Assembly (NCBI GenBank): GCA_009103225.1
Contig: RHPI01000810.1
Location: 558,001 to 622,000 of the forward strand
Direction: 5' to 3'
From: Chlorokybus atmophyticus
Taxonomy: Eukaryota; Plantae; Mesostigma and Chlorokybus algae
DNA length: 64,000 nt
The notes beneath the pieces are model-generated. The model saw only the letters and a program-made list of their open reading frames with translations, searched no databases and was not told the origin of the DNA. Positions within the stretch are counted from its first letter, which is position 1, and each line of letters starts with the position of its first letter. Below are positions 470 through 59,438 of this stretch, piece after piece. A program made the translations under genes and the position numbers.

Positions 470-1672
470 ATCATCGTTCTATAAGACCGTATTGTAAGGA
501 ACCCTTCCTTGAGAATGAGCATGGCGCAATATATTTGTTAACAATTGTTGCCATGACGATGAACTTCGGCTCGTGCTAGTATGATCTTGTAATATGTCGG
601 TATATCGCATTGTGCATGAAGGTTCTGTTGTTCATGCTTGAGGAATACAACTTGACAATATTCACTTTAAGAGAAATAACATGTACTATTGCATAATATA
701 ACAACTTTATAGCAGATTTATTGTCTTTGTAAAGTGTCGCACACCGTAATGGTTTCTTGGTGCAGGATGACATGCAACAATCACCTACTAGTATATGTCC
801 AACGGCATAGGGTAACACCCAGGGGGCGAGCACTCAGAGCGAATACACACAAGCACAAAGCGTATAATCGACAACACAACACGGCATGTGTATACTGATA
901 ATGAGTATAAATTCATATGCACTATACACATGATAGGCGTGCAGTTGAATTACTCTCATGAAAAGTTAGATCAAGTGAAGCTTTGAAATCGATAATTATA
1001 TTTTTAAATTAAGGTTGTATACTTTATGATTTTCAATAACTATTTATTGTTATGATGTGCATTGTCATATTGTTGCAACCCGTAATTGAAATTTGTTAAG
1101 ACAAGTGTGTCCGAGATGGGTTTTAGCATGACGCTGGTGCTTGGGACCTCTTTAACAACATAACACAAAAAACGAATGACCGCATGCACGTCGTCAAGCC
1201 TGTTGTGCACCAGGTGTCGTACATTTCAACTCAGTATGTTCAGCATCTGCTCTTGTTATTTGAATTAATGTCACATATGAAACTCCATCTTCCTCCGTGA
1301 TAAAGGTATAAAATTGACCAACTTACAGGGCCCTAAGTGCATCAAGAAAAAAAGATGTTATACTGACCAAGTATTTCTGCAAATTCGAATGCATGCAAAC
1401 GTGTGTGACATGCGCACCGCCTCACCTGTCAATTTTATATTGTCCCTCAACTGACAACAATAATCTAGTTTGCTGGTGGAGATAAAACACCATATCAACA
1501 TGTTGTCGGGTTGATTGTGGTAAGAGGCATTATTGATACCGGTAACGTAAAGACCAAAGACAATTTTGGGACATGCAAGGTTTTGAACGGGGGTTCACAA
1601 TGTCGCATGCAGGCCTGTGGCCAGAAGATGTGGATGAGATTAAAGCGCGCTTTCAACGTTCAACTTCCACAC

Positions 1673-1815
1673 TAGTCAGAGGGCCAACTCGTTCCCACGG
1701 GCAAACCAATTTACAGCCGTCTCATTGGTCGGCTTGTGTCAACCAATGGGGGGTGGCCTTTTGTCATAGGATGTGAGTGCATTGCACTTGTAAGGGGGTT
1801 GATGTCGATTGATTT
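1673..1815. repeat. Left terminal/subterminal inverted-repeat motifs of the Academ-like element
   Basis: TAGTCAGAGGGCCAACTCG at 1673-1691; GTTGATGTCGATTGATTT at 1798-1815, with a partial second copy at 1844-1858. Confidence 0.65.
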
Positions 1816-2540
1816 TCGCGTGCTGTGCGGCGTGTAAGTAGACTGATGTCGATTGATTGATGGGTTTTTGGACCCTCTCGTGTCAGTCGTCACGCGATTT
1901 GCCGCTTGCTGCATGTCGCGATCAACAGGCATCAAGTGTTTTGGGTGCCTCTGTCGAGAGGCTGAAATCAGCTGCAGAGGCCGTTGATCAGCTATCGGCG
2001 AGTCTCGACAGGTTGATTTTCGAGCTGTGTGACTGCGAATTAGGGTTTGCTTGCCCGTTTTCCCGCCGGCGCCATCTCACTAGACCACCTTAGAACGGTA
2101 GGCGCCAAGGTAGCGGCGGCCGGGGGTGTGTGCCTGGCCGTGAGGTCATTGTGGTGGGTGTCTGTGTTGTGTCGCTGTTGAGGTTTGCTGTGAAGTAGTG
2201 CGCCGCTCAGTGGGGTCGGTGACTTCAGCTATTGAGGAATGCTGGAAGTTGGCGTGTCTGGTTGTGGGTGGTGAGGTCATGTTTGGAGTCGTGGGCGTCG
2301 CTTGGGAGAGGGATTCGCTTGCAGATAAGTGTGCCGTGCATGCTGCTGTTGTATTTGTGTTTTGTCAACGGCTTTTGGGTATTGATGTTGGGCTGCGCTA
2401 CACGTAAAAGCAGAGCTGTATGTCAATGACATGACTGGTGTGAGTGCATCTCCATGTTGTGTGCGTGTTGTAGACGATACTTGGCAGTCACTGCAAAGTC
2501 AGCGCACCAGGCCTTTTTGCAGCAAAAGTTTCAGCTATTG

Positions 2541-3680
2541 TCAAAGCACAATTGACTTATCCCACGACAGTGGTTTGCTGCTAATGGTATAGCCTGATGC
2601 TTGCAGCATTTTGCGTCCTAGATATTCAGCATAAGCAGGGGGAATGCACTCCACAAGTGTGGTTTCAGCTTGGATCCATGGGATGCCCAGTGCTTTTTGC
2701 CATCCTGCCAGGGTGCCACGTGAACCGGACTGGCCATACACTGGATACATTTGGAGTTTCTGTGTGCACTTTGGCTGGCTGTTTGTCTTTGTTTTGTGAC
2801 CTGATAATGCACCTAGGCTCTTGGCAGTGTAGTCACACACCATGTCCTTCTGGAGAGCTGGCTTCGTTTCAAACAGCCTGTGTCTGAAAGGGGAGGAAAA
2901 ACATGGTACCACAGAGTGTCAAGGTGGTCTCCATGTGGTCTGCTGCGCCAGGTACATTCTCAATGATGTAAGGCTTGTGTTCCTTGTGTAGGCGGAGACG
3001 CAGTGAGTGCAGCAGCGTGCTGTGGTTCCACTTGTCTCCATGTTCTTGTCTCTGAGACTCTGGTATGCATGCAGCAAATGCCTGGCACGGTGGGCTTGCC
3101 CATATCACATCGTAGGGGGACCGGTCTTCTGTCAGAGTGTCGCCCTTCAGGAATGGGAACGGGTACTCTGGCTGATCAATGTGGTCGAGGCCGGTGACCT
3201 CAAACCCTGTCCTGTAAAGACCCATGCTTGCTCCTCCTCCACCGCAGCAGAGATATAGAAGTCGTGGACGGTCTGGTGTGCCATCTTCCCTGTGTGCAGT
3301 ATGTGTGGCAAGCAGAGGTGAGGAACCACTCCAGATAGGGATACTGGGTAGTGGAGGGGCTGTCTTTTGTGTTGTGGGCACGCGCTGACCCCCAATGCGG
3401 ATGCAGGAAGCTGTGCCCTTGTGCAAGATGCACACCACAATGTTGTACTTCTCGGGCTTGAGGTGTTGTACTTCCTCGTCGGTGTATCGCACGCTCAAGC
3501 GCGCTGGCAGCAAGCAAGTGGGTTAGTTGATCTGCTGTTGGTAAGGCTGCGTGTGTGTGTGACGTAGGCCATCATGTCACCTGTGCTTGGGTTGTACTTA
3601 TAGATTGTCCCTGGGTACCACTTCTGGTCGGCGGGCCAATAACCCATAACATCAAGGCCAACCAGTTCAGCTCCGCCCAT
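2541..3680 (-). pseudogene. Tudor domain + small phage-type C5 cytosine DNA methyltransferase fusion (one frameshift)
   Basis: Spliced Tudor ELVGLDVMGYWPADQKWYPGTIYKYNPST|ARLSVRYTDEEVQHL (GT-AG intron 3580-3504). MTase motifs: I LLYLCCGGGG (~3231-3260), IV VIWASPPCQ (Cys codon 3085-3087), VI IIENVPGA, LCGTMF, then RHRLFE after a 1-nt frameshift near 2887-2901, and C-terminal LGIPW...ECIPPAYAEYLG. Stop at 2541. Confidence 0.8.
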
Positions 3681-4580
3681 TGTGCAGCGCTGTAAGTATA
3701 TTGCAGTGCTGGAGGCTTCACTCTGCAAGCAGTGACGTATTGGTACAATAATCGATGCCTGCATACTGTGCACATTTGTGGAGAAAGCTGGCTCGGCTTA
3801 CCTCGGGTGCCGTTGTGCTTGTAGCAGGTTGAGTCGCATTGGCAATGGCATGATGCGTGCTGCCTCGCCCGCAGCGGGATAGACGAGGTTGTTGGATGAA
3901 GATCTAGGCAACCAGTGCAACAAAGCAATGTGCTGCAGGTGAGCTGAAGTACTGCTTGCCTGCATGCCAGCAGCGTGCACGCAGTCCAACTCGCATTCAC
4001 ACGTCGTGACCCTCAACAAAAACACCAAGTCTTCAGCTGCATGTCTTGTACTGCTATGACTGGCTCACTCACATCTGTCGTGCAGTGCTCCCCGGAAGCG
4101 CTGGAGCCAGGCCGTATATAAGGCAAGTAGCGCAGCGCTTGCCCATGCCATCCAAACGCTGCAGCGTCGCACATCTGGCATGTGCATTGCAGGTTAAACC
4201 ATTCTGGCAGCTTGCATTGCAACTTGCTCCTGCCGTCACCAACTTGAGGGTGCGTTAATTCAATGCAAAATTGGTGTCAATCATTGCGGTATTTATATAA
4301 ATCCATTGTGATTATCAAATTCATATCAATTCCTTGCAAAGATCATATTGACAGCATAACACAATATTGTTCACTATCCATTCGATGCACCATTGCTAGA
4401 CAACATTCCATGCAAAATCCATATCAATGTGTGGTAAATACCATTATTTCCATACAAGTTGTATGATACCATATGCTGCATTAAATTCATACAACTTGGC
4501 ACATAGCATATAGCGATCTGCCCTCACAAGCAGCACTTGTAGCAATGCAGTAAAGACAAACAGATAATGTTGTTACCACA

Positions 4581-4898
4581 ACATACAACTTGCTGATATA
4601 ACACACAACCTATCTACTTGCTACTCTACCAACATTGTTCAAGCTCTACAAAAATAACCAACTAAGCAACACCTTACAACCACTAACAACCACACTACCA
4701 GCCATACACACACACACACACACACGCGCGCCGCCAGTCAGCGCCTCGTGCTGCCGCCGTTGCCGTCGCCGTCACCCGTCAGCGCCAGCGCCACATACAA
4801 CTTGCTAATATAACACACAACCTATCTACTTGCTACTCTACCAACATTGTTCAAGCTCTACAAAAATAACCAACTAAGCAACACCCTACAACCACTAA
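4581..4898. repeat. 106-bp direct repeat pair around a (CA)n + GC-rich spacer
   Basis: Copies at 4581-4686 and 4793-4898 differ at 2 positions by eye. Confidence 0.9.
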
Positions 4899-5757
4899 TT
4901 TAAACTTGCGCATTAATGCGTGCAATAAACATCAATATCATTATAATGTAAATTGCGTATGAATTGCATATCGAATGCTATCAATTCAACCGCATGTATG
5001 AATGCAATGCTGATATCCGTATGAATTCAATGTACCCTCAAATTGGTGACGGCATTGAATGATGTGGTCGCCTGTGGCAAAATGATGCCAGCAGGCAGCA
5101 GTAAAATCGTACAACTTTAGGTACATGCTGCATTGGTCCTGATGTCGACCAAGTCGTGCCTGCTGGCCGTCGGGTACGGTATATGCAAGGCAGATGTTGC
5201 ACACTACAGCGCGCCGCGAATGTCCCCTCCCGCCATGCTGGACGTCGCACTGGCTGGCGAGCTGAGGTACTGGTTGTTTCAACGCCATCCACGTTGGCGC
5301 CGCCGCCACCTCCTATGCACACAACTAACTGGTCAGTACAAACGGTTATGCAATAGCGCCAGAATGCAAACCCTAATAATGTGTGCAAAACCCTATAAAT
5401 GTGAGCGTGCAAGTTACATCTGTGCGAGAGTCTTTTCTCACCAGCTTGATTACCTTCTTCTTTGTCCCATATCTGGCTAAGCCAGTCATCAATGGCCTCA
5501 CTGGTCCGGCGCAAGCCTTCGTCGCAGGGTGGTGGACGTGCGGGCGCCGTCGCGTTGCCATCGCGGTCATCATCCCAGTCTGAGCACTCACTTTCTGGCT
5601 GGCTCTCATCGCTGCTGGACGACTTGTCGTCATCCTCCGGTTCTGCAGCATGTCATTGCATGACGCAATCAGCAGGTGAAGCTTGCTTTAATATACGTGT
5701 CTGGCTCGCATGCAAACTGTCAATGCACAAGGAAGTGTGCTAACCTTGCGGTTGGGT

Positions 5758-8700
5758 TTAAGTGCTTGATAGATCCATGGTGTAGTCATTGGAGTCAGCG
5801 TGGTTGCAGCACTTAGTGCAACGGCATGCCGCCGAGCACGGCATCCCTACCCGTTTGCACTTGCATTGGCTTGTAGCGCATCTGTTCTTCGCGCACCCGC
5901 AACCACGCCGTAGTAAGTGCCGTCGCTCCTTGCATGCAGTAATATTCTCAATGGTGTCCATGAAAGGTGCCAATACGCCGTCGCTTTCGCCCCAGCCATA
6001 ATCACCAAGGTACAGCAAACGCAGCTGGGGCTGGCTTGACTGCAGCCACATGCGGAGAACCCACACACAGCGCGAGCTGTGCAGCATCAATGCGTCGGTG
6101 GAAGGTAATCTCATGTCCTCCATTATATAGGTGTGAAAGATGCCCTCGTCCAATGCCTTCAGCTAAAGATTCAAGCACTCTGTGTCCCATTTGTCCCCGT
6201 GCATGCCGTTGGTCGCATGGAACAGCGCCTCTGCGCTCCGGTGCTTGGAGAATTCACCTTTGTGTTTGTAGAAGTAGGCGCAGCCAATGAGGCGGACACC
6301 CACAGCCTTTAGGCTGTCATCTTGCATCGTGCAGCCACTGGTGATGAACTCAGCCTCTTTGAATAGTACTTTACGCCAATAATAGTTCTTGCCAATGCCA
6401 GTTGTGAAGGATGTATAGTCACATCCAGTCGCGCAAAAGAACAGCATAAAGGTGGCCCGTGACATTAATGGCAGGAAGCGGAGCTGTTCGAAGGCCTCCA
6501 TATGCTTCAGCAGCTGGTTCATCAGCAGGTAACTTGGTCGGTTTCTTGCACCTCGCTCATAGTTAAACTGCACTGTGACTGTCTTGTTGTTCCTTTGCCA
6601 AGCAGACACGCATGTCAGGCCAATCATAGTGATGTCCGCATCCGAAGAATATGTCATGATATTGTTGCACTCTGTAATGCTGGCGTGTATCCACATTCGG
6701 CTGTCAGCCTCTGCATGGTTGCAGGCGTAGCGGCCATCCACCTGGAGGCGATATGGCCTTTACCTTCGCCCGTGACTACCAGCGCCGCGTCGCCCAGACC
6801 GGGATCGTCGCTGCCTCCTGCGAACAGTACCGACACTCCCATAGGCAGGTATGGTCCCATCCCAAGTGCTGGGAGCTCGTGTGAGACCAGATTGCACAGC
6901 CTGCATTTGAAGTTGCCGTCTCCGATTGCTTGCCGCCAGTTGCGAGGCACTACGGTGTTGAGATTGAGTGCCTGTGGGACCGTAAAAGTGGCTGTTGCAG
7001 AGTCTCTTTTCTTTTGCAGGCTGCTCTTCACGCCCGAAGCATGTCGCGGGCAGTCAAACACGATGTGTAGGCTCTGCATGTTTGCTCCGCGAAGTCTTGG
7101 CAGCAGTTGAGTCCTCATCAACTGGTACATGTAGTCGCGCAGGGTCAGGCACCCCACCGCAGGGGTGATGTTAATCACAACATCCCTCGGAGATAATGCA
7201 GGAGACTCCATGTGGTGGGTCGAAACTGGTGGTGTCCTCGGAGCCATCTGTTAAAGCACCAATGAATGTGGACTTGGCGCCACTGTGCATACGGCCATCC
7301 GCGTCGAAGAGAGCCTGCGGTATCTCCAGGTAACGTGCGCACGCTGCGTCGCGCTGGCTGCCATTGACACACAACCTGCGGATGATGAGCGCAGATTGTC
7401 GGTTCGCTTGTTGAAGGGCATTCACTGCACTGGGCTCCTTCTTTGTCTTGAGCATTGTCTTTAAGTTGTGGTTCTTTGCGATTCTTGGAGGTGCAACAGA
7501 ACGGCAGTACTTGTTGGTGACCCAGACCTTGAAGCTGTCTATGCCTATGTCTCCGTGGCGTAACATAACTTACAGCAAAGCTGCGCGAAGCACGCTCTGA
7601 GAAACAAATGTATGCACATATCAGCGGCAACAGCGGGCTCAGCTACGACATCTTTGGTGAGGTGAGACAGCTGCTCGTTGTGGCCACGCCTCTCAGCGTG
7701 CCTTCCCTCCCAAGCACTGAGTGCATACCACTGACTGTTTGCTCTGTGCGCTTGTAGCCGCGCGCAGTGGAACGCTCCAGGCCAGGACCATCTCTCCGTG
7801 ACAATGACATCTTATTGAATAGTCGCTTCAGGTGCTGCGCGCGGTACGACATGTGCAAGGTCCTTTCCCGCATGTAGTCAGCGGTAGGCCTACTCAGAAT
7901 CTGCTTCAAATCATTATTGATGATGCACTCATGGGCCTCATTTGCTGCCACATGAGCCCCTGGTCTTCCTGTAAGCCGCACCGCAAACTGGCCAGTGCGC
8001 AAGGGAGCCAGAACATCTTCGGGCCAAGTGTTCATGTCCACCAAGTGCTGCGCAATTAGCCTACTATAATGTGGTCGGTCCCAAGCGAATGCCAGCGTTT
8101 TAGCGACTTTTAGCTAGCAGCACGGAGGTTCCAATCCGAGGACCTCACGGCCAGCCAGAGCAACAGGTAAGCCCTGGCATGCTTGTGCATAAAATCCCAC
8201 CACAGCTTGAAGGTGGAATCCTCCTCAGCCCTTGTGTCTCCCCACGCCATGAATGCTGCATAGTGCCGGTGGTCGTTGATCTCGTGATATGTGCTGCCAT
8301 AGTCGGACTCCGTGTCTTGCCACTCTGGTGTGGCCGCGTGAAACAAGTCCAATAGGTATCGGTACAAAGCCTCAAAGCTGTGCACCAAGAAATCATGCTG
8401 CTTTGTCCAGTTGCTGCCATCCACAATGTGGTTGCGCGCAGATCCTGCTGCAAACCCTGCCTCATCGGTGAGTGCATCAAGACCAGCATTAAAATACACC
8501 TTGAGCACCACTGGCAGTATGCGATACAGGGTGTGCCAGTCCCCTGGAAGCGAGTACAGCCAATCTCAAGCGCCTGGCTCATCAGTCTTTAATGATTGCA
8601 TCAGGTTGTACATTTTCTAGTCACCAGCCACCACCAACTTGTGAACTGCATCGTCTACACGCAGGCGGTCATGTAGCTCCAACAAGGCTAGTCGCAAGTT

Positions 8701-9912
8701 CTCTTGCTTGTCAGGATTGTATGGCAGCAGTGGGAGAAAGTGCACTTGGCTTGGGGTCGCGCCTTCGAGCCCTCTCAGGTGTGTCCACGTGTCCTTGAAT
8801 GTCTTCACGTCATTGTGCAGTCTGCGATTCAGAATAGTGTTGTGCAATGAGATGCTCATGTGGTCCCACGCTTCCTTCTCAACTGCATTCTTCTCTGTAA
8901 CAGCTTCCACACTCAGCCCTTCTACAAAGCGGGTGCGCGTCGTCATCACAAATGTTGGCGCGCGCTGTGCTGGAGCTGACAGCGAGGCCTCAGATAAGGT
9001 TCTGCTCCCGCATGTCTGCAACGCAGTCACGGGATCAAGACATAATTAGCACACTTAAAGCACATGATCTATTGGCAGACCCAGCACGCCTTTCCAACCG
9101 CAGTTCCATGCACAAACTTACCTTGATCTCACACTCTTCTCTGGTTTCCGTGGCTGGTGCTGGGCAAGGTATGATGCATTGTGTAGTGGTACAATGCAAG
9201 TCACCACCTTCTTTGCCCTTGTATTGCAGTGTGCGCTGTGCCTTCAAATCCTAATTATTAATTGTGCAAAACACAAACTGCTTGCCAATGTCAACAGGTA
9301 CAGGTATTGATAGGGCCACTCCAGCTCTTGCAGAATGTGCCGCAGAAGGATTCCACGGCTAGCGCAAACACCCAATCGGTTGAAAAGCTCCAGCACTCTC
9401 TGCGAAGGACTCAAGGTGTCCACCGCATCAGCAATGGCCAGGTGCACCGAGCAGTAGGCCTCTTTGTTGAATGCATAACATGCATTGGCCAACAGGTATG
9501 CTGTCTGCAGCACCTGCAATGTCTTTCTCATGGCCGCATCAGCTTGCTCCTCTACAATGTCCTCGACATGTATGCACGTTAGTGCAGCGAAGAGCTTTAT
9601 GAGGTCTGGGTCCACTGCAGACAGCTCACCCACCAGGTTTAGCTCACGAAGGTCTGGACATGTTTTGTGGCTGGCTCTACGCTTGCTTTCCTTTTGCATG
9701 AGAGTCTTCACATACTGGAGCACTTCGACTGTCAGCTCTGTGCATGCAGAGCCATCCATGTCGCTACTGGTACGCACACCAGGCGTCCTGTGCATCAACC
9801 TTAGGAGACACCTGCATGGATCCGACCAGCCGGCCAACAAGATTGTTCCCAAGCGGGGGGATGATGTAAGCCGCACCGCATCACCAAAGGTGACACGCAC
9901 ACGCAGCGCCAT
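5758..9912 (-). pseudogene. Academ-type transposase fused to XPG/PIN-like nuclease and Cys8 zinc finger, with multiple stops
   Basis: Transposase: SQRVLELFNRLGVCAS; FVFCTI-NN*D (decayed DNxD, 9248-9259)...LHCTTTQ; LVVAGD*K...LPGDWH; AVRSSDWNL; GQFAVR...NEAHECIIN. Nuclease: IVFDCP, NHAEADSRMWIHA, YSSDAD, H3TH-like TGCDYTSFTTGIGK. C-terminal YGW...CGCAKNRCATSQCKCKRVGMPCSAACRCTKCCN. An acidic tail probably continues in an exon at ~5650-5400. Confidence 0.8.
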
Positions 9913-10198
9913 GTCACAAGGGACGGTCCCTTGTCATCACTTTCAGTTCAGCTGCCAATTGGTGCATCATAATGCATGCGTCTTTTGTCTGCATGTCCAT
10001 GGCGATGCGCTGCATTGCTAAATCCAAGCTGGTGATGGCAAGCTCTTGGGCTACACGCTGCATGAGCTCCATGCCTGCAGCCTGGTCTTAGGTCTGCATT
10101 GATCTCTGACCCCTCAGGTGACGAGCCTCGGCTTCCACTTGTCCAACACGATGCACCGCATCCTCCCGGGCTTGCATGTGTTGCTGCAGGTAGTTACC

Positions 10199-12402
10199 TT
10201 AGTCAGGATATTCGTGCCTAGAGCGCTGCCTCAAGTGGACATCCACATGCCATACCCGGTTCTCTGCTTGCAATTCGCTCAGGTCTGCATTCTTTCCCAT
10301 TAGCACAAGTTCCAATTGCCTTGCATGTTCCATGCTTGCTGCGAGGCTGGTCATTGATTGGGCATGAGCCTGTTGAGCACGCTGCACATCATTGCACATG
10401 GTTAGTAAAACTCACTCAACCGTCTGCACAGCCCGTCCCCCTGTAAGTTCGTCACTGCAAATAGAGTTACCATTGAATTGCGCACAGCCTCGTCTAGATC
10501 AGTTTGCAATCCGCGCATTGTTACAGTGTTCAGCGCTTCCTTTGCCTGACACCCACGCCCTAATGACTCCATGCTACGCATGGCTTTCTTATGCTGTGCA
10601 ACCTTTGATTGACACTCACTCCTTAATGCATTCTCCTGCATTGGTGGCATTCAATGTAGTCGCACCACAACGACTGGCATGCCCATCAGCAACTGATCAC
10701 AAATACTGAGGGTGCAGCACTCCCTACTATACGCAGCAGGTGACATTCAAAAACAACCTCGAACATGCGCAACACGCACCTCATGCAATCTTGCAGCCAC
10801 ATTGTCTGCACAGCCATTGCCACGGAAAGGATCACCTGATTATTGGCAATGTTATTAATATAACAGCTCACTGACTGGCCCACGCACTCCCCNNNNNNNN
10901 NNNNNNNNNNNNNNNNNNNNNNNNNNNNNNNNNNNNNNNNNNNNNNNNNNNNNNNNNNNNNNNNNNNNNNNNNNNNNNNNNNNNNNNNNNNNNNNNNNNN
11001 NNNNNNNNNNNNNNNNNNNNNNNNNNNNNNNNNNNNNNNNNNNNNNNNNNNNNNNNNNNNNNNNNNNNNNNNNNNNNNNNNNNNNNNNNNNNNNNNNNNN
11101 NNNNNNNNNNNNNNNNNNNNNNNNNNNNNNNNNNNNNNNNNNNNNNNNNNNNNNNNNNNNNNNNNNNNNNNNNNNNNNNNNNNNNNNNNNNNNNNNNNNN
11201 NNNNNNNNNNNNNNNNNNNNNNNNNNNNNNNNNNNNNNNNNNNNNCCCCTACTGCCTACCACCCTACCCAGCGACTGAGGAATTCCACCATGCACAGTGT
11301 TCACGCCAGTGGGTCCAGCAGCTGCATAGGCATGGTATGCATGTTCAAAATGATGCGAAGGGCTCATCAGCCGTTGCGGCATGTCACCACATGATGGTTG
11401 CTGAGATCCCTTTTTTGGGGAATGCACTCCTGGACGATTCAAGCCTCTCGGATCCGGCTGATGTGGTTGAGCATACCTTGGATCCTCGTTCTCCTTGCCT
11501 AGATGATAATGGAGCCGTGCTTGATCCTGCAAATTACAGTTGCTGTCATGCACACAGTACTCACATGGATCATTCTTCCATGCACTGGCTCACCTGCTGG
11601 GATGGCGTGTTGCTGCCAAATGCTGCACTCAACCGCTGAGGCGCATGCACTCCAGCCCCAGCGTTGTATAATGTCTGCAGTGGCCGCACTCCATAGCCCT
11701 TGACACCGTAGACTGGCTGGTACCCATCCACATTAGGAGAGCCAGCGTCCAGCGATGGGTCTCCTAGCCCTCCCACATCAACCCGCATAGGCGTGGAGGC
11801 AGGTGCATGAGCAGGTAAGCCGCCCTGGGGAGTACCCGAGGACATTTCCACAAAGGAGGCGACCGAGGCTGCATTGGCTTGCTCTGCAGCTCGCTCTTCA
11901 TGATAATTACCTCATCCTCCTCAGCAAACTTGTCCTGGCACCAATAACGACAGCACACACAACGAATACAATGCACGGCATGCAGAATGCACACGGCACA
12001 CGGCCATGCAGAATGCACACAATCACACAACGTGCCGGCAAAAAACTCACAGCAACACCCAGTCCAACTCATCTCAAGCAGTACAAGCATCCCGTCATCC
12101 CCTTCCTCCCAGCGTCGAATAGAGGTGAGTCCGGACACTAAGATTTCGTAACGCTTGGATGTCTTGGCCTTCCGTAAGTTACGCAAAATGTACGCTAGCA
12201 TGTTATTCTCCCTATCCTTCACCTTCACAGTGTGTTTCTTGAAAGCCACACAATGCCTTTTCACAGGGTCGGACGGTTGCACTGCTGGACGCTTGACGCC
12301 TGGCACTTCCTGCTCACCCGTAGTGTCTCCTTCGGGCACCACACGTGCTCTAGCTGCAGCGTCGCCACGCTGAGTACACGTCCCCCCCCTCTTCCTCACC
12401 AT
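10199..12402 (-). pseudogene. Unassigned ORF fragments (partly coiled-coil-like) at the 5' end of the Academ-like element
   Basis: Fragments 11764-12402, 11570-11851, 10402-10650 and 10199-10399 are on the transposase strand. The region is interrupted by the gap at 10893-11245. No recognisable domain. Confidence 0.35.
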
Positions 12403-12614
12403 TTTCTGACGACGACATCGGTCTCACACCCACACAACACCGCCACCACCACCGCCGCCGCCACCGCTGCCTCTGGCGAAAAGAGTGGCTTGTGCACAGT
12501 GTTGCGCGCCCTTAGTTCAAAATCCAGCAACCGCCACCCACTGAACGGTCCCATCACTGATATTGACTGCAACGCCAATCAATTTTGATCACTGCACCCC
12601 CCTCGACCCGCTGC

Positions 12615-12849
12615 AAACCACCGATCACACTCGATCAAGACGAACACAACACCCTCCACGACTCGACACAAACCACCAATCACACCTGATCAACACGAAC
12701 ACAACACGGGACCACACACGGAGGCATCACAAATCAATCGACATCAACGCACCACGACTCGTTTGCGACCTCCACCAACGGTCTCAAAGAGCCACATCCA
12801 ACGCTCCTCCCTAATCGCCGGCCCCCACGCGAGTTGGCCCTCTCGCTGA
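12615..12849. repeat. Right subterminal tandem repeat (55-bp period) plus right terminal inverted repeat
   Basis: AAACCACCGATCACACTCGATCAAGACGAACACAACAC (12615-12652) vs AAACCACCAATCACACCTGATCAACACGAACACAACAC (12670-12707). Inverted-repeat motifs at 12731-12748 and 12830-12849. Confidence 0.7.
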
Positions 12850-12966
12850 CACGGTAAAATGCAAGCTAGCAATCCGACAGTATGCTAACATTGACTTGAC
12901 TAATGTAATACCAGCCTCATGTGAGGGAGTGCCAGCTGGCAGCTTCAGACGCAGCAGGCGGCGACA

Positions 12967-15366
12967 ATGGCGGCGGCGGTGGCGGTGGCGTCGGCCACGC
13001 TCTCGGCATCATTGAGCCTGCGGCCGGCGCACCTGGGTTCGCCCGTGGTAGCCCGCCGCGCCACCCCCTTGCGCGCTGCCGCCCGCCGCCCATACCTGCT
13101 TGTAGTGCGAGGTGCGCGGGTCTGCTTGCTAGTTGATGCTATTCCACCTCTCACCGCTGTGCCGCATGCTTGCGCAGTAAAGGTAGTTATGATACTTATG
13201 CAACGTATGGTATCCGTGTATTGGGTGCAGCGGCTGTTCAGCTCTCGCAAGATGAGTTGAAGAAGCAGGCTGCTGACAAGGTGAGTCCAGCACAATGCCA
13301 ATGTGAAGGGTTTCAATGGCAGCGGCACATGCTTTTGCTAATGGCAATGTGAAGAGCTTACCATATCGTAGACGTTCGGAAATAAACAGCGTCTGCGCAT
13401 GCTCATGCACTGCCAGGTGGCACCACATCACACAATGTTACAACGAAACACTGGGACCCATAGAAATGTAGGGGGTGGTCAGCAGCCACAAGCATGAGCA
13501 GTCAACAGCCTGACGAGCACCATCTGTTCCTGTACAGTTGACTTTACAACTCAAACAACAGAGTGTCCGCCAAGTACATCGTGTTGAACAGTGTATTGCA
13601 ACGCAGTTGTCCTGCTTACTGCGTATTTTATCTGGACAGGCAGTGGAATACGTGAAGAGCGGGATGGTTGTCGGGCTGGGCACTGGGTCCACCGCAGCGT
13701 TTGCTGTCGACAAGATTGGAAAGCTTCTCAAGGTATGCATTGCAAGGAAAAAAAGGAGACAGCTGCACGTTGCATGTGCAATGGCGTTGTCGCATGCACA
13801 ATGTACAGCTTGTAACATTTTTGTGCAACTTTTGCGCCATAGTGCTACGCTTAGCCAGACCTGCAATTAAAGGCAGGGCAACTGGCATGTTTCGTTGACG
13901 TAAGAAGCTCGCAGCTTTGCTATCAACCAGTGGGGTTGTCATCGTTGTTGCTGCGGCTGCTACAATGTTATCTAAAACAACAATAACACTCATCTGTGCT
14001 ATTTGTCCAGTCTGGCGAGTTGAAGGACATCGTCGGGGTGCCCACTTCAAAGGTAACCAAGTACACACAGTTGCAGCTTTGCATGCATTTTGTAGTGGTT
14101 GTTGCTTGCGTGCTTTCGGTGTTACGCGTTCCATAGCCTTGTGTATGTTAGCAGTCAAAGATTGTCCAGCTGGGTCGTTACTGAATTGCAAATGGTAGTG
14201 CTGTGGTACAATGCTACTGGCGAGGCACGAGTAGTTGTGATGCAGCATGCATGCACACGGTGGCAAGCACTTTAGTATACAACACTAATTGCTCGATGGT
14301 GCGGGTTGCCTTGCATGCATTGAGGTGTGTTCTTATGACACTGTCGTGCTTGATCAGAGGACAGCCGAACAAGCTGAGTCGCTCGGAATCCCTCTCGGCG
14401 GACTTGATGACTACCCCAAAGTAGGGAAGATATCTGATAGCAGACTTTGACACATACAACCTGCTACACAGCATAGCGTCTCTGATTTCAACAGCTGTTC
14501 CTTATGTTCAGCTTGACATTGCGATTGATGGCGCTGATGAGGTGGACAATGACCTGAATCTGGTGAAGGGCCGCGGTGGTGCATTGCTGCGCGAGAAGGT
14601 AATGGCTCCGACTGCCAACAATTCAAGTCGAAAGCTGCATGGTATATTTGTGGTCACGTTCATTTATGTTCTGCAGATGGTTGAGATGGCTTCTGACAAG
14701 TTCATCGTTATTGTTGATGACACGAAGGTAAGTGTCGATATAGGAACACAAGCATGCAGCACGTGACGGTGCTGCTGCCTTCGGTTCTCTTGGACCGCAA
14801 CACCTGCAGCAAGTGACTGTTGGTGTTGGTGATTGCGCAGCTTGTGGATGGGTTGGGAGGCAGCAAGCTTGCCATGCCGGTGGAGGTCGTCCAGTTTTGC
14901 TGGAAGTACAACCTGAACAGGCTGTCCGGGCTTGCTGAGCTCAAGGGACTCAAAGAGGTGTGTGTCTGTCTCTGTTGTTGAATTGGTTTAACTGAGTACT
15001 ATCAAGCAACGTTGCTGCGCGGTGTGCGCGCTGATGATTGGACCCGATGCAGGCCAAGTTGCGCATGGAGAACGGCAAGCCCTACGTTACTGACAACTCA
15101 AATTACATTGTCGACCTCTACTTCGATGTAAGTAGCAATTGCAGTGAGGGTGCTTCGTTGAATCCGTTTGCAATTGATCTTCTGAAAGTGTTTTGGGGCG
15201 TAACGTTGTCACTGTCTTGCTGCAGACCCCAATCATCGACTCCAATGCTGCCTCGAGTGCAATCCTTGCGCTTGAAGGCGTCGTTGACCATGGCCTGTTC
15301 CTTGGCATGGCCACAGCTGTCGTTATTGCGGGCTCTGATGGCATCACAGTCAAGGAGAGGAAATGA
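12967..15366 (+). CDS. rpiA: Chloroplast ribose-5-phosphate isomerase A (10 exons)
   Basis: Ala/Ser/Arg-rich transit peptide; [30 protein letters not shown]...[36 protein letters not shown]; phase-consistent GT-AG introns. Confidence 0.96.
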
Positions 15367-16144
15367 TCAACGCACCTAGGCGTAACTATGTAGAGCCCTT
15401 TTTCTTTGAATTCAGGATACACATCATTTGATTGCCAAGTTTTTGAAAAGTCTTAACCAGTCCACTGTGCACCGCGCACCTTGTGCACGAGTCGTGCATG
15501 AGTAGTTGAAACAGTTTCAAAGAGGTGCAGCACGACAGATTTGTTGAGCACCTGGTTGAAGGTTATGTTATGTTGACAGTTATGTGCATGTATCTGACAA
15601 AGTGCTTCTTTCATACGCGTCATGCATGGTCCCATGAACAGGCAACACACAATGTAGGTAGTTGTAGCAGTTTTGGTCGCGGCTTGTAGGTTGCCTGCAT
15701 GTCCCTGGCTCAAGTTGCAGAACACACCCCGTTGCATTTTTGCAAAGCTGCTCAGTACGCTGCAGTATTGCCTTGGCAGACCCTCGCACTGCTCACCTGT
15801 TTCTCCACGGCACCACGCGACTGCACGGCAGATTCACGCCACGCATGGTCCAGATTAGACTCTTGCGCCTCCAGAAGCATGAGCTAGGCCCACTGCGCAA
15901 CCTACAGCAGCAATTCAGCAGGTACCAGCCTCAGTAGCTAACAAGTAGAGTGCATCAAGTAGAGTGGCACGCCCTCCCAAGCAACAACTGGCTTGGGTAC
16001 ACAGGCACTGAATCCGTCCTGAAGTGGTCCTCGCTCGGGTGCGCAGAGCAAGCGCTGCGTGCAACTAAGCTTACTGCACAGCAGTGCGTGTTTGCCGCTC
16101 ATGCGTGCAGGAGCACTGCCGCTGCAGCGGCGGTGACGGTGGAG

Positions 16145-49304: not shown

Positions 49305-52300
49305 ATGGCGGCGGCGGCGGTGCTGCGGGGGGCGCTCCGGCGGCAGGGGCTGTCGGTCTTTAGCGGAGCAGGTTTGTTGTCCTCTTCTAGGTCGTTCCAT
49401 GCAGGGCGCGCTCTCCAGCGCATACTCAGCGCACCCATCTCCCCTACATCGTCTGCCACACAGGTAAGTGTGAAGCCAGCAAGCTGGCAATGGCAACGCA
49501 ACCGCTCAGACGAGTATACTGATATGGAAACACTCATACGCAAGCTTGCTTTTTGTCGTTGCCCGTGACGTCGAGCCTCTCATGTTCCGGCATGTTGTCG
49601 CATGCATGGCTACTCCTCTTGGACGATGTTGGACGATGCTTGTAAGTGCCTCTAAGTTATGTCACTTACTGGTTGTCTGTGGAACAGTCCAATAACATTA
49701 CTTCGGCATACCCTATTGTGGACCACACCTTTGACGCTGTCGTGGTTGGAGCGGGTGGCGCAGGCCTGCGTGCAGCGATTGGGCTTTCAGAGCATGGTTT
49801 CAACACCGCATGCATAACCAAGTTGTTTCCCACGCGATCTCATACGGTTGCGGCTCAGGTGAGCGTTGGCAATATTGATTAAGTTGCGTTTATGCTTGAA
49901 GTTTGCTTATTGCTAGAGCAAGCTGATGCTGTAGTTTATTGCAGGGTGGAATCAATGCTGCTCTTGGTAACATGACTCCAGATGATTGGAGATGGCACGC
50001 TTACGACACAATCAAGGGCAGTGACTGGTTAGGTGAGTTGATCTGCTGTGTAAAGCGTGATTTCTTGTTGTGCTGCACCTCCTGCTTGCTTGGTTCTTAG
50101 AGAATGCGTATGTGCAGGCGACCAAGATGCCATACAGTACATGTGCAGGGAGGCGCCGAAGGCAGTGATTGAGCTAGAGCATTATGGCTTGCCGTTCTCA
50201 CGCACCGAGGAGGGCAAAATTTACCAGCGCGCGTTTGGTGGGCAGAGCTTGGATTATGGCAAAGGTGTGGCAGATGGCGTTTGTCTTGGTGTTGTGTAGA
50301 CGACAGTGGTTTCCATCGTGAGTGATTCTTTGTTACTGAATTATGCAGGTGGACAGGCATACAGGTGTGCCTGTGCAGCAGACCGCACAGGCCATGCTAT
50401 GCTTCATACACTCTACGGCCAAGCTATGCGCCACAACACACAGTTCTTTGTGGAGTACTTTGCCCTAGATCTGCTGATGGATGATGAAGGTAGGTGTTGT
50501 AGGCATGCATCCACTTAGTTTGTTGACAAGTGATACAAGCACCAACACCTGTGCGCCCTTAGGAACCTGCCGGGGAGTCATCGCGCTTTGCATGGAAGAC
50601 GGCACCATCCATCGGTTCCGCTCGCATCAAACAATACTCGCCACTGGGGTTAGTGTCTGCACACGTGCACCCTTTGTTTCTTTGTTGATACGGTTGATTT
50701 GCTACGCAGCTCGGTTTAACACCTTGCGCTGTTGTGTGCAACACCTGACACGATTGCCATTACAGGGTTATGGTCGTGCTTACTTTTCGGCGACCTCTGC
50801 TCATACATGCACTGGTGATGGTAATGCTATGGTGGCACGAGCTGGGCTTCCTTTGCAAGACTTGGAGTTCGTCCAATTCCACCCTACTGGCATATATGGA
50901 GCTGGGTGCCTGATTACAGAAGGTAGGCATTGCGCAGTCACCGGTTTGGAGCTGGTGGACGAGACAAGTCGAGCAGAGCCAATGACTCATGACGTCTCAA
51001 GATGGTGTTCTGGTTGCCGCATGAGTAAGCTCATTGACTGCTGCATACAGGCTCAAGAGGGGAGGGTGGCATTTTGCGAAACAGTGAAGGCGAGCGCTTT
51101 ATGGAACGCTATGCTCCAACAGCCAAGGATCTTGCATCCCGTGATGTGGTTTCACGGTCCATGACCATTGAGATCAGAGAAGGGCGTGGTGTAGGTATGC
51201 ACGTTTGTTACCTGTGTTGGACACCGTGAGAAGTACAGGACTGGTTTGCATCTTGCGGCTGTTATGTTGCCGATTCAACTGATGGCCGCACGCACCGTGC
51301 AGGCCCCAACAAGGATCACATCTACCTCCACTTGAATCACCTGCCCCCTGAAGTCCTGGCAGAGAGGTTGCCAGGCATTTCTGAGACAGCAGCAATTTTT
51401 GCTGGTGTTGATGTGACCAAGGAACCAATTCCAGTCTTGCCCACTGTCCACTACAATATGGGTGGCATTCCTACTAACTACAAGGGGCAGGTAACTCTCA
51501 CGACTTTCTGCACTGTTGTGATGGCCTAGATGGTGCATGCTGTGTGTGTTTAACTAAGCGATTGTGTTGTCTCAGGTTGTCTACAAAACTGAAGGAAATC
51601 CAGACACAGTGGTGCCTGGGCTACTGGCTGCTGGTGAGGCGGCTTGCGCATCTGTGCATGGTGCCAACAGGCTTGGCGCAAACAGCCTGCTGGACATTGT
51701 TGTCTTTGGGAGGGCGTGCGCAAACACCGTTGCAGAAACCACAAAGCCCGGTAAGTGTTTCCGACTGACAGCACGTGTGCAAGCACACTGAAACGCATTA
51801 GCTGAGAGTTCATGTCGCGGTTGCACTCAACAGGGGAGCCGCATGCGCCGCTGCCCAACCATGCTGGGGAGTCGACCATTGCTGCGCTGGACAAGCTGCG
51901 ATATGCCAATGGAAACCGGCTCACTTCTGAGATTAGGTTGAACATGCAGAGGGTAATGCAGGAAGATGCAGCTGTCTTCCGAACACAAGAAACTTTGGAA
52001 CAAGGTAATTCTCTGATATGAACAAATCTTGTTCTAAAAGGGGCAGTTTGCTAAGAAATGCTTGGTCCTGCAGGAAACAAGCGCATTGAAGATTGCTATC
52101 AGAGCTACAAGGATATCAAGTTGGTGGACCGCAGTTTGATATGGTAAGCGCCAGTTAGTGACAACTGCAATGTACTTACTAAGCAGGCATATACGCGGCG
52201 TGCTGATGTCAACCTTGATTAGGAACACCGATTTGGTTGAGGCTCTGGAGCTTGAGAACCTGTTAATAAACGCATCAGTCACCATGCATTCTGCTGAGGC

Positions 52301-54659: not shown

Positions 54660-55437
54660 CTAAGCTCGGCTCTTCAGGTACTCCTGGACAACGTTGAGTG
54701 CCTCAGACTCCTCACCATAGTCCTGGGCACAGAAAACTAGCTGTTAGTACTAGGCCGATACAGCAGCCACGCGAGCCACCACAGGCTTGACTGCAGCCGC
54801 TACCTTGATGACGACGCAGGAGCAGCCAACAACCTTGCGAGCCTTGCCCTCCGCATCAATCTTGCAGAGCTGCAGTGCAACAGGTATCAGCTCCATCAAC
54901 GGTGCCGACAACATGATGCTGTGTGCTTTACTCGACTCACTTACCCCTGCCCACTCGCCGAGCTGCTTAGCCTTGGGGACTTGGATCAGGCTGACAGAGT
55001 GCTCCTGGCAGAGGGCCTCGACCAGCTTGGTGTAGTCGGGCTGGTTGCAATCCTCGGCCACAATGCACAGCTGGGCCGTGTGCTTCTCAATGGCCTTCGC
55101 AGCTTCGTGCAGACCGCGCGCGAGGCCGTCGTGAGCCAGACTCTTCTTCAGCACCTGCTGGAGACCGGTCATGATGTCCATGGGCTCACCCGGAGCGGGA
55201 GCGCTGGCCTCGGCGGGCGGCGCATCCTGAACAGGCTCGTCTCTGCGGATGCGGCGCAGCAGATTAGCCTCAGATACAAGGCTGTGCACTGACTCGCATG
55301 CTTCCGTTAAACATGTGTATGTATATGTGTTACTATATATAAGCCGCAGCTCAAGCTGTCGTCAATTGCAAAGCACAGACATGCTGGTATGCAGTAATGA
55401 CTGACATTTTACTGCAATGTGCTCACCCGTCCGACAT
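54660..55437 (-). CDS. RPS12: 40S ribosomal protein S12 (eS12)
   Basis: [38 protein letters not shown]|[22 protein letters not shown]|DYGEESEAL. There is a probable 5'UTR intron at ~55480-55904. Confidence 0.97.
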
Positions 55438-56241: not shown

Positions 56242-59200
56242 ATGGAGTTCGGTCCCGCCACAGACGACGCCGTTAGGGTTGGCACAGGCTCCGCTGCCGC
56301 CGCTCTGGTCAAGGATGAGGAGATTGCTCCTGTCAAGGAGGAGGAGAAGGACTTCTATGCGGCGTCAGCGTACGCCGAAGTGGATAGGGTTAGAATGCTG
56401 GTTGAAGTGGAGGGCGCCAGCGTGAATGCTGCTGACGATAGTGGCCACTATGCCCTGCAGTGGGCTGCTCTGAACAATGCCACTAGTACGGCGCTGTTCC
56501 TAATCGAGGTGTGTTTTCATGTGACATACACGAAGGACATCCAACAATTTGCAATTGGTCGTTGATTTGCCATTGCTGTCACTGCAGAGATTACGGATGT
56601 CGTTTTGAATGGGAACTAAGTCCGAACATTTGCAATGCGTGTGAAGTCTTGTCCTTTTCGTGACAACTGCTCTCTGTCTACTATCAAGAACCGTTGGTGG
56701 GTCCGTGACAATGGTCACGTGCTGTTTACGTCATATGCGGGCATGACAACCGTCTGCACTGCAATCGCTGTGTCATCATGTGTCTTGCCTTCAAACAGAC
56801 ATTGACTTTAACATAATAATGGTTGAAGCATGATCGCGTAACACTGTAGTCGTGAGGCCAACTGCACGACAACACTCAGCCTAGAGCATTTCGTTCTAGT
56901 ATTCCAGGTGTTCCAAACAGCGCTTGATGTGTTGTGCGTATGTCTGCAGCGTGGTGCTGTAGTCAATGCCAAAGACCCCACGGGGCAGACAGCGTTACAT
57001 TGGGCATCAGTGCGATGTTCGTTGGAAGTTGCGGACCTTTTACTTCGCAATGGAGCCAACCTAGAAGCGCGCGACACTAACGGCTACACAGTAAGCAGCA
57101 TGCCTGGCTGCTTTTCTTGGCAAGCTGCAGTCACTCTTGTTATGCATGGCCACAGCTACAGCTGTAGCTGTAGCTGCTTGTTGCACCTTTACTGTCCCAG
57201 GAGACAAACAACTGTTATGTTGCATGTTACAGGTATGCCATGTTGCCGCGCAGTACGGCCATACAGCTTTCTTGTATATGCTTGCAACAAAGTGGAGTGC
57301 AGATGTTGATGTATTGGATAATGACGGCCGCACGCCATTGCATTGGTACGCACTTCGAGCTCACTTGGAACTTTGCTGTGAGATGCTACCTAAGAATGCA
57401 AGCAGAGTGCAAGTCGTTCTGTGTGCTGTGCATGCAGCATTTCCCTGATTGTCTTCTGCTTGCAGGGCTGCGTATAAGGGTTTTCCTGACCCTATTCGGT
57501 TGCTCCTTTTCATGGATGTGCGAATAAACCTGCCAGATAGGGAAGGTATGCGTGACAGCTGGTCCAGATTTTCTGCTCTTCATGCTGTGTGTCCTGATGC
57601 ACATCTGCTATACATGAGTGTCCACGTTTAAGGTGCATCAGTGCATCTGACAGTAAACTCCACGCAGGTTGTACAGCACTGCACTGGGCAGCAATAAGAG
57701 GCAATGGGGAAGCAATTACAATGCTTATACAGGTTGGGTCTTCGGAGCTACTGTCCGCAGCTGACGCAACAGGCTCGACTGCTGCACAGCTTGCTGCAGA
57801 GAAAGGGCACTCATATCTCGCGTCTACAATGGTATGCAGAATGGGCAACCATTGTGGCGTTTCAGCACTGTGCCTCTGGTCTGATCGCAGATCTTTGCTT
57901 TACATTGGTTTTTTAGAGGAAGGCACGACATGCGAAAGACCAGCGTGGCTGTTTTGGTGCTCGCGGACCCTGTGGCTGGGCTGCAAGTTGCGGACTCGCT
58001 CCTGTCATTTGGGCGATCATTGTTGGTCTGGTGCTGTCATTCATTTATTGCGTCATCAATGGTGAGTTGACGTCAACTGATATATGCATGGATCGCTGAT
58101 GCGGCCCTCATCACATCTGTTCTATGCATGCATGGAAGCCACACTGCCTCGGCACGCCCAGTGCCACATTGCTCGCGTCCAACTGCATTGTGTAATCAGG
58201 TGCTGGGTTCGCGCCACTGTCACGTGTGGAAGCCACCTTTGCTTGGCTCGCTGTTGCATTGGCTACTGGTGGGCTTGGACTTCTATATGCTGCATCAAGG
58301 TGGGTTACAGCTTGATGCAATGTAAAGGTGTCTATGCTATGCACATATGCTTTTGAAGCATAAGTATATGTGTGTATAGTTGCCAGTGTTGCGTGCTGAT
58401 AGTATTGTCATGTGCTTGCAACTGATCTCACATTGAGACAATGCTTGCAGCAAAGATCCGGGCTTCATTGACCGCAACGTCAATCCTGCTTCTGGGGAAG
58501 CAACAACGGGGCGGCTTAGTCTGGAAGATGCTGCTGTTGCGTCCGGACAATGGTCCTTGCTGTGCCCCACCTGCAAAATCGTAAAGCCTGTTCGCTCGAA
58601 ACACTGCGCTGTTTGCAACCGGTGCGTAAGCCAGTTTGACCACCACTGCCCGTGGATCGGGAACTGCGTCGGGAAGAACAACAAGTGGCAGTTCTTTGTG
58701 TTCCTGTGTGTGGAGACAGCCGCCATGACTACCGGGATGGTCATGGCAGTGTACAGGCTTTACAATGACTCCCCGAGGCCCTCTGGGACAGGCTCATTCC
58801 TGGAGTTTACCTTCACAGAACATGGGGGCGCCATTGGGTTCATCGTGTTTGACATGTTTATGATGTGGGGTGTGCTGATCCTCACGGTGGTGCAAGGGGG
58901 GCAGATAGCACGCAACTTGACCACCAACGAAGTGGCCAACATGCACAGATACACGTATCTTCACGGCGACAATGGCTTCTTCCGCAACCCGTGGGACAAA
59001 GGCTGCTACCGCAACTGCAAGGAGTTCTTGATATTGGGATACTCTCCCGACGATGCGGTTGTGCCCATCATGCAACCCTCGGCGCAGCACAACATTGACA
59101 TCATGGAGCGCAGCGAAGAAGGGGCGGAAACCACGGAAACAGAGAGGCTGCTGGAGTCGATAGGCGTGCCCCACAACCCGCGCGGGTGCATACCCAAGCT

Positions 59201-59438
59201 CTTTGGGCAAGGCCGTCATCATCATCGCGTGCGCGGCCACGTTCACGGCCCCAGCTGCAATCACAACGGGCACTCCCATGCGTACTCCAATGGTCAATCA
59301 CATTTGGTTGCGCAAGGCCAATCCAAAATTGGCAGCAACTTAGGCGTTAGCGCAATTAAGGCAGATAGCCTGCCCCTTGGACTGGGTTTGGGTCTGCTCA
59401 CACCTGCAAAGACTAAAGACCCAAAACACAGCAGTTGA
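56242..59438 (+). CDS. Ankyrin-repeat DHHC protein S-acyltransferase (PAT23/PAT24-TIP1/Akr1 type)
   Basis: Ankyrin repeats ([47 protein letters not shown]); [40 protein letters not shown]; TTNE motif. Confidence 0.96.

Follow-up and report, generated by a model that had tools for sequence, protein, structure and literature searches.

Does a DNA transposon in the alga Chlorokybus atmophyticus carry a gene that would both read a histone mark and write DNA methylation, and can the copy at this locus still make the protein? Cytosine methyltransferases are already known in retrotransposons and in giant-virus-resident Mariner elements. In CMT (chromodomain/BAH) and DNMT3 (PWWP/ADD), which are host genes, a histone-mark reader guides a C5 methyltransferase. 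The locus considered here lies in a stretch of 64,000 nucleotides (contig RHPI01000810.1, positions 558,001 to 622,000), which is referred to as the window. An earlier note, made from the letters alone, had read in it a spliced Tudor domain joined to a compact C5 methyltransferase, enclosed in an Academ-like element.

A Tudor-like exon and a methylase in one layout

The Tudor-like exon and the compact C5 methyltransferase form one gene layout on the minus strand, running from 3680 to 2541. The gene features described in the earlier note were all located on that strand where it had placed them, with a canonical intron of 77 nt and the frame kept. The parts upstream of the methylase motifs are:

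3581..3680, minus strand: exon with an ATG at 3680 and the first Tudor-like half; it encodes GAELVGLDVMGYWPADQKWYPGTIYKYNPST, of which the Tudor half is GYWPADQKWYPGTI
3504..3580, minus strand: predicted sense intron of 77 nt, GT..AG (GT at 3580, AG at 3504), which splits the Tudor-like domain
3433..3503, minus strand: second Tudor-like half, ARLSVRYTDEEVQHLKPEKYNIVV, with the pattern of Tudor strands 3-4 only
3690..4222, minus strand: tentative upstream sense exons 4222-4073 (Cys-rich) and 3903-3802, with GT..AG introns 4072-3904 and 3801-3690

The join across the 3580-3504 intron is in frame, and the downstream open reading frame (ORF) begins three codons before the acceptor. The exon from 3503 (ARLSVRYTDEEV...) continues the frame into an ORF of 214 aa, and a linker of about 55 residues separates the Tudor-like part from the methylase motifs. 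From the tentative exons 4222-4073 and 3903-3802 the frame is likewise open into the Tudor-like exon. Pfam assigned no family to the ORFs and exons of this upstream region (3690-4222), an Atlas search of the Cys-rich exon gave no usable match, and the RNA contigs supported neither these exons nor their introns. A tblastn search against the whole window found one methylase copy only; a weak match near 22.3 kb was rejected as chance. No exact match to the 123-aa C-terminal ORF was found in the assembly collection.

When the 33 residues of the first exon were searched against the PDB, a single chain was returned, 7de9_A (E = 0.002 over 29 residues), in which GAELVGLDVMGYWPADQKWYPGTIYKYNP aligns with GESLVGSRIKVWWPMDQAYYKGVVESYDA and the aromatic residues at the aligned WP and WY/YY positions are kept. 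The 7DE9 structure shows the Tudor domain of Arabidopsis PDS5C with H3K4me1 bound to it (Niu et al. 2021). The nearest named Atlas clusters to the first exon were Tudor_3/Agenet/PTM-DIR17 Tudor, all with scores below 0.8, and are a lead only. Pfam and NCBIfam gave no family for the unspliced Tudor ORF or for either half, and the second half alone had no significant match in Pfam, NCBIfam or a PDB sequence search, a PDB match at E = 1.1 being discarded as chance. Evidence for the Tudor domain of the earlier note is partial, similarity to the Tudor barrel of about 55 residues being significant in the first half only. The N-terminal module is probably Tudor-like and of the PDS5C type. By analogy, we hypothesize that it may be specific for H3K4me1. 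In plant PDS5C/RDM15 and MSH6, to whose Tudor (7DE9) the first half of the domain aligns with shared aromatic positions, the Tudor tethers an enzyme to H3K4me1 chromatin; in the window gene the partner is a DNA methyltransferase.

A frameshift parts the catalytic halves

Motifs I, IV, VI and VIII and the IPPxY end of the compact subfamily are all present and align with relatives. The six landmarks that had been picked out from the letters (motif I, SPPCQ, IENV, RHRLFE, GIPW and ECIPPAY) were found at the minus-strand positions listed here:

2899..3273, minus strand: N-terminal half of the methyltransferase, with motif I, PCQ, the clade-specific insert and ENV; matches PF00145 and phrog_363
3258-3220, minus strand: motif I (LYLCCGGGGASMG)
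3099-3082, minus strand: motif IV, catalytic ASPPCQ
3069-3010, minus strand: clade-specific insert between motifs IV and VI
2967-2944, minus strand: motif VI, IIENVPGA
2916-2899, minus strand: LCGTMF
2889..2898, minus strand: frameshift, 10 nt between the GTMF and FRHRLFE codons, where relatives have 4-5 codons
2541..2888, minus strand: C-terminal half of the methyltransferase in another frame (ORF 2541..2912), with a short target-recognition region and no methyl-CpG-binding domain (MBD)
2888-2868, minus strand: motif VIII, FRHRLFE
2687-2676, minus strand: GIPW
2651-2613, minus strand: ECIPPAY end (ECIPPAYAEYLGR)
2543-2541, minus strand: stop codon

An uninterrupted frame through the methylase domain is absent, the break falling between motifs VI and VIII. 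Since only 10 nt stand where relatives keep 4-5 codons, the break is a frameshift; the interval is too small for an intron. Contigs of X1, X2 and X3, which carry one organism label and come from two studies (2013, 2021), and a contig of X4, from a third study, all show the sequence of the frameshift (2898-2889) unchanged. The frameshift, which the earlier note had proposed to check in reads or RNA, is thereby confirmed by contigs from three independent studies. Because the antisense exon 2056-2951 described below is free of differences and the X4 contig agrees, the frameshift belongs to the organism and not to the assembly. The gene is therefore dead in this copy and its protein cannot be made; the copy is a pseudogene of the compact C5 methyltransferase family. 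For this copy, the proposal of the earlier note that the element may write its own methylation is not supported, with the two catalytic halves parted in this way.

The locus is transcribed in antisense

The contig evidence covers window positions 1601-4560 and includes a spliced transcript of the plus strand:

2056..4280, plus strand: antisense spliced polyadenylated transcript of about 1.65 kb, in contigs of X1, X2 and X3 without differences
2056-2951, 3075-3317, 3407-3517, 3604-3691, 3825-3938 and 4086-4280, plus strand: antisense exons
2952-3074, 3318-3406, 3518-3603, 3692-3824 and 3939-4085, plus strand: antisense introns (with allowed shifts)

X1-X3 cover neither the skipped intervals nor, within 1601-4560, anything outside 2056-4280, and so they behave as RNA; the X4 contig (2823-3050) is unspliced and DNA-like. 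All five introns read GT..AG on the plus strand, with a good extended consensus (GTGAG/GTAAGT ... CAG/TAG), and in one X1 contig the match stops at 4280 and a run of 20 A comes next. The transcript is antisense to the whole Tudor-methylase gene and starts about 380 nt inside the left end of the transposon. Three of its introns overlap predicted sense introns and two cut through sense coding sequence. Its longest ORF (116 aa) mirrors the coding sequence, and no signs of a real protein were found. Neither a sense mRNA nor the predicted sense introns appeared in the RNA contigs, which show presence and not absence and may miss a rare sense RNA. The placing of Tudor and methylase exons on one transcript, a check that had been suggested for the fusion, thus found no sense transcript, the only spliced poly(A) RNA assembled here being the antisense one.

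The 2056-4280 RNA is, in our reading, a natural antisense transcript or a long non-coding RNA produced by a dead element. X3 additionally contains short contigs of diverged paralogues, which indicates that other copies are transcribed in some orientation, and any sense RNA of such copies might be a pairing partner of the antisense RNA. One may go further and hold that the relevant product of the locus today is this spliced plus-strand RNA, as an exapted lncRNA or as an antisense regulator of the sense transcripts of other copies. The five canonical introns and the poly(A) tail, the identical assembly in three runs of two studies (word depths 9-195) and the paralogue contigs of X3 all speak for such a role, but the RNA has no conserved structure or Rfam family, contig depth measures expression poorly, and incidental transcripts are frequent from dead transposons. 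We therefore consider it unlikely. No Rfam family was found in 1500-5800, and a promoter/terminator scan gave nothing, its models being bacterial and not applicable here.

The gene lies within the ends of a DNA transposon

The Tudor-methylase gene (2541-3680) is located within the bounds (1673-12848) of an inverted-repeat element, the features of which are:

1673..12848, strand not assigned: DNA transposon copy of 11,176 bp, AcademX-like, with inverted repeats at its ends and identical flanking ACAC
1669-1672 and 12849-12852, strand not assigned: target-site duplication (TSD) ACAC, 4 bp, the same on both sides
1673..1691, plus strand: left terminal inverted repeat (TIR), 19 nt, matching the right end at 16 of 19 positions, with an exact 14-nt core at 1678-1691
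12830..12848, minus strand: right TIR, which pairs with the left repeat
1798..1858, plus strand: subterminal motif, an 18-mer (1798-1815) and a 15-nt copy (1844-1858), with an inverted partner at 12731-12748
5758..12402, minus strand: putative transposase region in several ORF pieces (XPG-I-like, other-frame and CXC)
6163-6741, minus strand: XPG-I-like nuclease piece with a visible acidic motif; the nearest Atlas clusters are XPG_I/TCR (0.80-0.83)
6654-7247, minus strand: piece of the transposase region in another frame
5758-6153, minus strand: CXC (TCR-like) piece, PF03638 at E = 4.9e-4, below the cut-off

The inverted-repeat-bounded element that had been proposed around the methylase is real, with 19-nt TIRs and a TSD. 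Its inverted repeats align as described; its right end, by our reading, lies at 12848 and not at 12849, and with this end the target duplication is 4 bp long. The short TIRs were found by a 14-mer scan and were missed by a repeat search with a default-style seed. Exact inverted 14-mer pairs 5-15 kb apart numbered nine in the region, whereas 30 shuffles gave 0.33 on average. The subterminal motifs, whose distances to the left and right ends are 125 and 100 nt, are candidate transposase-binding sites. The interior of the transposon contains an assembly gap (10893-11245), and its CpG observed/expected ratio (0.68) is no different from that of the rest of the window (about 0.70-0.73).

The minus-strand ORFs from 12402 to 5758 had no transposase match in Pfam, the TCR/CXC match being below threshold. 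For the nuclease ORF (6166-6741), Pfam and PDB searches returned nothing relevant, a homologue search returned one short protein with an uninformative gene context, and a single-sequence AlphaFold model had a pLDDT of 38. AcademX elements have TSDs of 3 or 4 bp (PMC10045372), and the TIRs and the 4-bp ACAC found here agree with this. An AcademX assignment, resting on the 4-bp TSD, the XPG-I-like motif and weak feature matches, is plausible, and AcademX appears to be the most likely element type. A whole-word search of the literature found no paper pairing Academ with XPG.

The Tudor-methylase gene could instead have arrived as an independent mobile cassette, or as a piece of another element, that was inserted in or captured by the transposon and is not its stable cargo. 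In favour of this, the gene and the transposase ORFs are about 2 kb apart, and the DNA between them (3681-5757) is non-coding and contains repeats, among them a direct repeat of 106 bp. However, the methylase gene has no inverted repeats or duplications of its own at its borders, and it is oriented as the transposase ORFs are, on the minus strand; we regard this origin as distinctly unlikely. Still further from the evidence is a domesticated host Tudor-methylase gene, or its pseudogene, beside the transposon by chance. Such a gene would be spliced in eukaryotic style and could bear a plant-type reader domain, as is predicted here, but the position between the TIRs and TSD of a transposon and the frameshift make it very improbable.

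The methylase belongs to a compact family and a giant-virus-associated clade

The N-terminal piece of the methylase matched PF00145 above the cut-off (E = 2.2e-5; 24.5 bits against a cut-off of 22), a profile search that the earlier note had proposed, and matched the phrog_363 DNA methyltransferase far better (E = 6.7e-19). A word-indexed search returned 2475 homologues at E <= 0.001, and an exhaustive HMMER search of 1.84 billion representatives returned 3008. Nearly all are about 200-290 aa long, and the named ones are DNA cytosine methyltransferases, for example from Chloroflexota and Acidobacteriaceae MAGs. The best 150 include no protein that resembles DNMT1, DNMT3, CMT or DRM. In IMG/VR, at least 547 viral contigs encode relatives with 40-51% identity, most of these contigs being phage-sized (5-65 kb). 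The earlier description of the methylase as a compact phage or virus type, distinct from DNMT1/3, CMT and DRM, is borne out at the level of the family by phrog_363, the homologues and the trees.

For the trees, the two halves of the window protein were joined with an X at the frame break. The window methylase formed a clade with four uncharacterised proteins (P0001, P0123, P0124 and P0246), with SH-aLRT support of 96 in an 86-row tree and 95 in a 66-row tree; the latter was a quick tree search with 19 IMG/VR sequences added, none of which (0/19) fell in the clade. Two features are shared throughout the clade, the insert between motifs IV and VI (IIP...RE.HGH.W.H.NLI) and a C-terminal signature (LGR...GYT..Y.P). 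All four relatives have an MBD (PF01429; E = 2.8e-8, 2.3e-6, 3.2e-4 and 0.024), inserted at one common position, after motif VIII and before the C-terminal motifs, and have no Tudor, whereas the window protein has about 40 residues and no MBD at that place and carries an N-terminal Tudor-like domain.

P0124 and a partial relative, P0126, are encoded on metagenome contigs of 25-29 kb with genes dense on both strands, among them topoisomerase II, the RNR small subunit, mRNA triphosphatase, YqaJ, protein kinases and a TBP-like gene. Judged by these genes, the context is giant-virus-like. As the nearest relatives bear an MBD and two of them are on giant-virus-like contigs, 'giant-virus-type within a phage-dominated family' is a more exact description than 'phage-type'. 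By tree position and gene content, the immediate lineage of the methylase is giant-virus-associated and nested in a phage-dominated family. An endogenised giant virus remnant would account for these relatives without any transposon cargo, but it is the least credible of the readings, being contradicted by the lack of other viral genes nearby, by the predicted intron and Tudor fusion (both missing in the viral relatives), by the position of the gene inside the transposon ends and by the ordinary host genes in the surrounding window.

Discussion

The locus is, in our judgement, probably a decayed, cargo-carrying cut-and-paste transposon with a spliced reader-writer fusion gene, the methylase of which is linked to giant viruses, and which is dead here and transcribed in antisense. 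In the transposon, the reader-writer gene would follow the transposase, with both read in one direction. The reader would be the N-terminal Tudor-like domain, of the kind found in plant PDS5C and MSH6, and the writer a minimal SAM-dependent cytosine-5 DNA methyltransferase, from a lineage shared with the MBD-bearing methylases on giant-virus-like DNA, inside a family abundant in phages. In intact members, the aromatic cage of the Tudor would probably dock on a methyl-lysine of histone H3, for which the closest solved structure points to H3K4me1, and nearby cytosines would be methylated. We infer sense splicing, a complete Tudor fold and nucleosome-directed methylation for the protein of such copies. 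The present copy yields no protein, its catalytic halves being parted between motifs VI and VIII, and its locus is transcribed instead on the opposite strand into a polyadenylated RNA with five introns and no convincing ORF. A bolder extension is that intact copies encode an active methylase of giant-virus ancestry, steered by its Tudor to H3K4me1-type chromatin, so that a mobile element would set cytosine methylation at sites defined by chromatin in an early-diverging streptophyte, and that spliced antisense RNAs from dead copies regulate the family in trans; this we hold to be doubtful, with a modest chance of being right.

The reader-writer logic of the window gene is that of CMT and DNMT3, with an unrelated catalytic lineage and an unrelated reader. 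Among transposable elements, retrotransposons of Symbiodinium and Klebsormidium carry DNMTs (de Mendoza et al. 2018, PMC5890265). Like the window element, these have a C5 cytosine methyltransferase borne by a transposable element in algae, including a streptophyte, and the window methylase lies within the bounds of its element, one of the features of a transposon-encoded DNMT in the sense of that study. Those elements, however, are of class I (LINE, DIRS, Ty3/gypsy), with Dnmt3-type or orphan DNMTs within the element coding region, whereas the window element is a class II TIR transposon with a compact virus/phage-type methylase in a separate gene with predicted introns and a Tudor-like fusion. 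Neither 'Tudor' nor 'chromodomain' is used as a word in PMC5890265, and a nuclear DNA transposon with a DNMT is not mentioned there; for methylase-bearing DNA transposons in marine viruses it cites Bao and Jurka 2013.

In the latter work (PMC3627910), Mariner-1_OLpv and Mariner-2_PGv are DNA transposons with methyltransferase cargo, as here, and Mariner-1_OLpv has a C5 methylase beside an EcoRII-like endonuclease, inside a phycodnavirus. The two Mariner elements are resident in giant viruses, with a restriction-type endonuclease as partner, no introns and no chromatin reader; the window element, in contrast, is nuclear, and its gene is predicted to be spliced and fuses the methylase to a Tudor-like domain. 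Epigenetic cargo of DNA transposons was treated in a December 2025 paper (PMC12730594), with TET/JBP (fungal), SET (HarbingerS/MuDR) and VANC (VANDAL) as its cases. These too are class II elements with a gene for chromatin or DNA modification, but their cargo removes or counteracts methylation or modifies histones, and no cytosine methyltransferase is among the examples of that paper. A Tudor-methylase transposon architecture is not described in the surveys searched, which dealt with the evolution of DNMTs and with fusions between chromatin genes and TEs, and our literature search found no paper on a nuclear cut-and-paste transposon with an intron-containing fusion of a methylase and a histone-mark reader.

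Conclusions

New for this copy are a frameshift verified by contigs, a transcript in antisense and a sister clade of MBD methylases that the trees support. As this sister group joins the same catalytic core to an MBD on giant-virus-like DNA, one viral methylase lineage would have been combined with two different readers. The pseudogene and its antisense RNA signal also mean that, in expression data for the gene family, strands and individual copies need to be told apart. The element itself may benefit by restraining its own activity, by blending in with the methylation of the host or by interfering with the host, among which sequence allows no ranking. If intact copies are active, they would offer a testable case of a selfish element that writes DNA methylation where a histone mark directs it.

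The transposon and its surroundings

Within the AcademX-like element, the non-coding stretch that separates the methylase gene from the transposase gene contains a 106-bp direct repeat, and the transposase region of this copy is interrupted by an assembly gap. Exons of a host gene start approximately 700 bp past the right end of the transposon, and ordinary host genes occur farther along the window.

4581-4686 and 4793-4898: 106-bp direct repeat, copies 98% identical
10893-11245: assembly gap, 353 N
13538-15379, plus strand: exons of a host gene resembling ribose-5-phosphate isomerase A
50481-51164: exon of a succinate dehydrogenase flavoprotein-like host gene
54750-55289: exon of an RPS12-like host gene
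58557-59438: exon of a DHHC palmitoyltransferase host gene

Transcription of related copies

Short RNA contigs from sequencing run X3 were found to match window positions 3218-3252 and 3427-3452, within the Tudor-methylase gene. These contigs, which carry mismatches and unlike flanks, indicate that diverged paralogous Tudor-methylase copies are transcribed, in some orientation.

Relatives of the methylase

Two prokaryote/phage-type proteins, P0121 (453 aa) and P0122 (447 aa), each consist of a tandem pair of compact C5 methyltransferase domains, both complete. Among the closest relatives of the window methylase, four compact C5 methyltransferases (P0001, P0123, P0124 and P0246) form a small clade in which a methyl-CpG-binding domain (MBD) is inserted after motif VIII and ahead of the C-terminal motifs. 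Giant-virus-like metagenome contigs carry at least two of the clade's members.

L001:2028-3050: MBD-bearing compact C5 methyltransferase
L002:10001-10843: MBD-bearing compact C5 methyltransferase
L003:9239-10534, giant-virus-like contig: member in two ORFs, one encoding the N-terminal half and the other the MBD and C-terminal half

The ORFs of the L003 methylase are separated by 78 nt. An intron or a frameshift may account for this break, or the gene may be truly split, and the methylase at L004:1064-2359 is arranged in the same way. The joining of a 5mC-reading domain with a 5mC-writing enzyme in this clade suggests that giant viruses may perform maintenance-like methylation.
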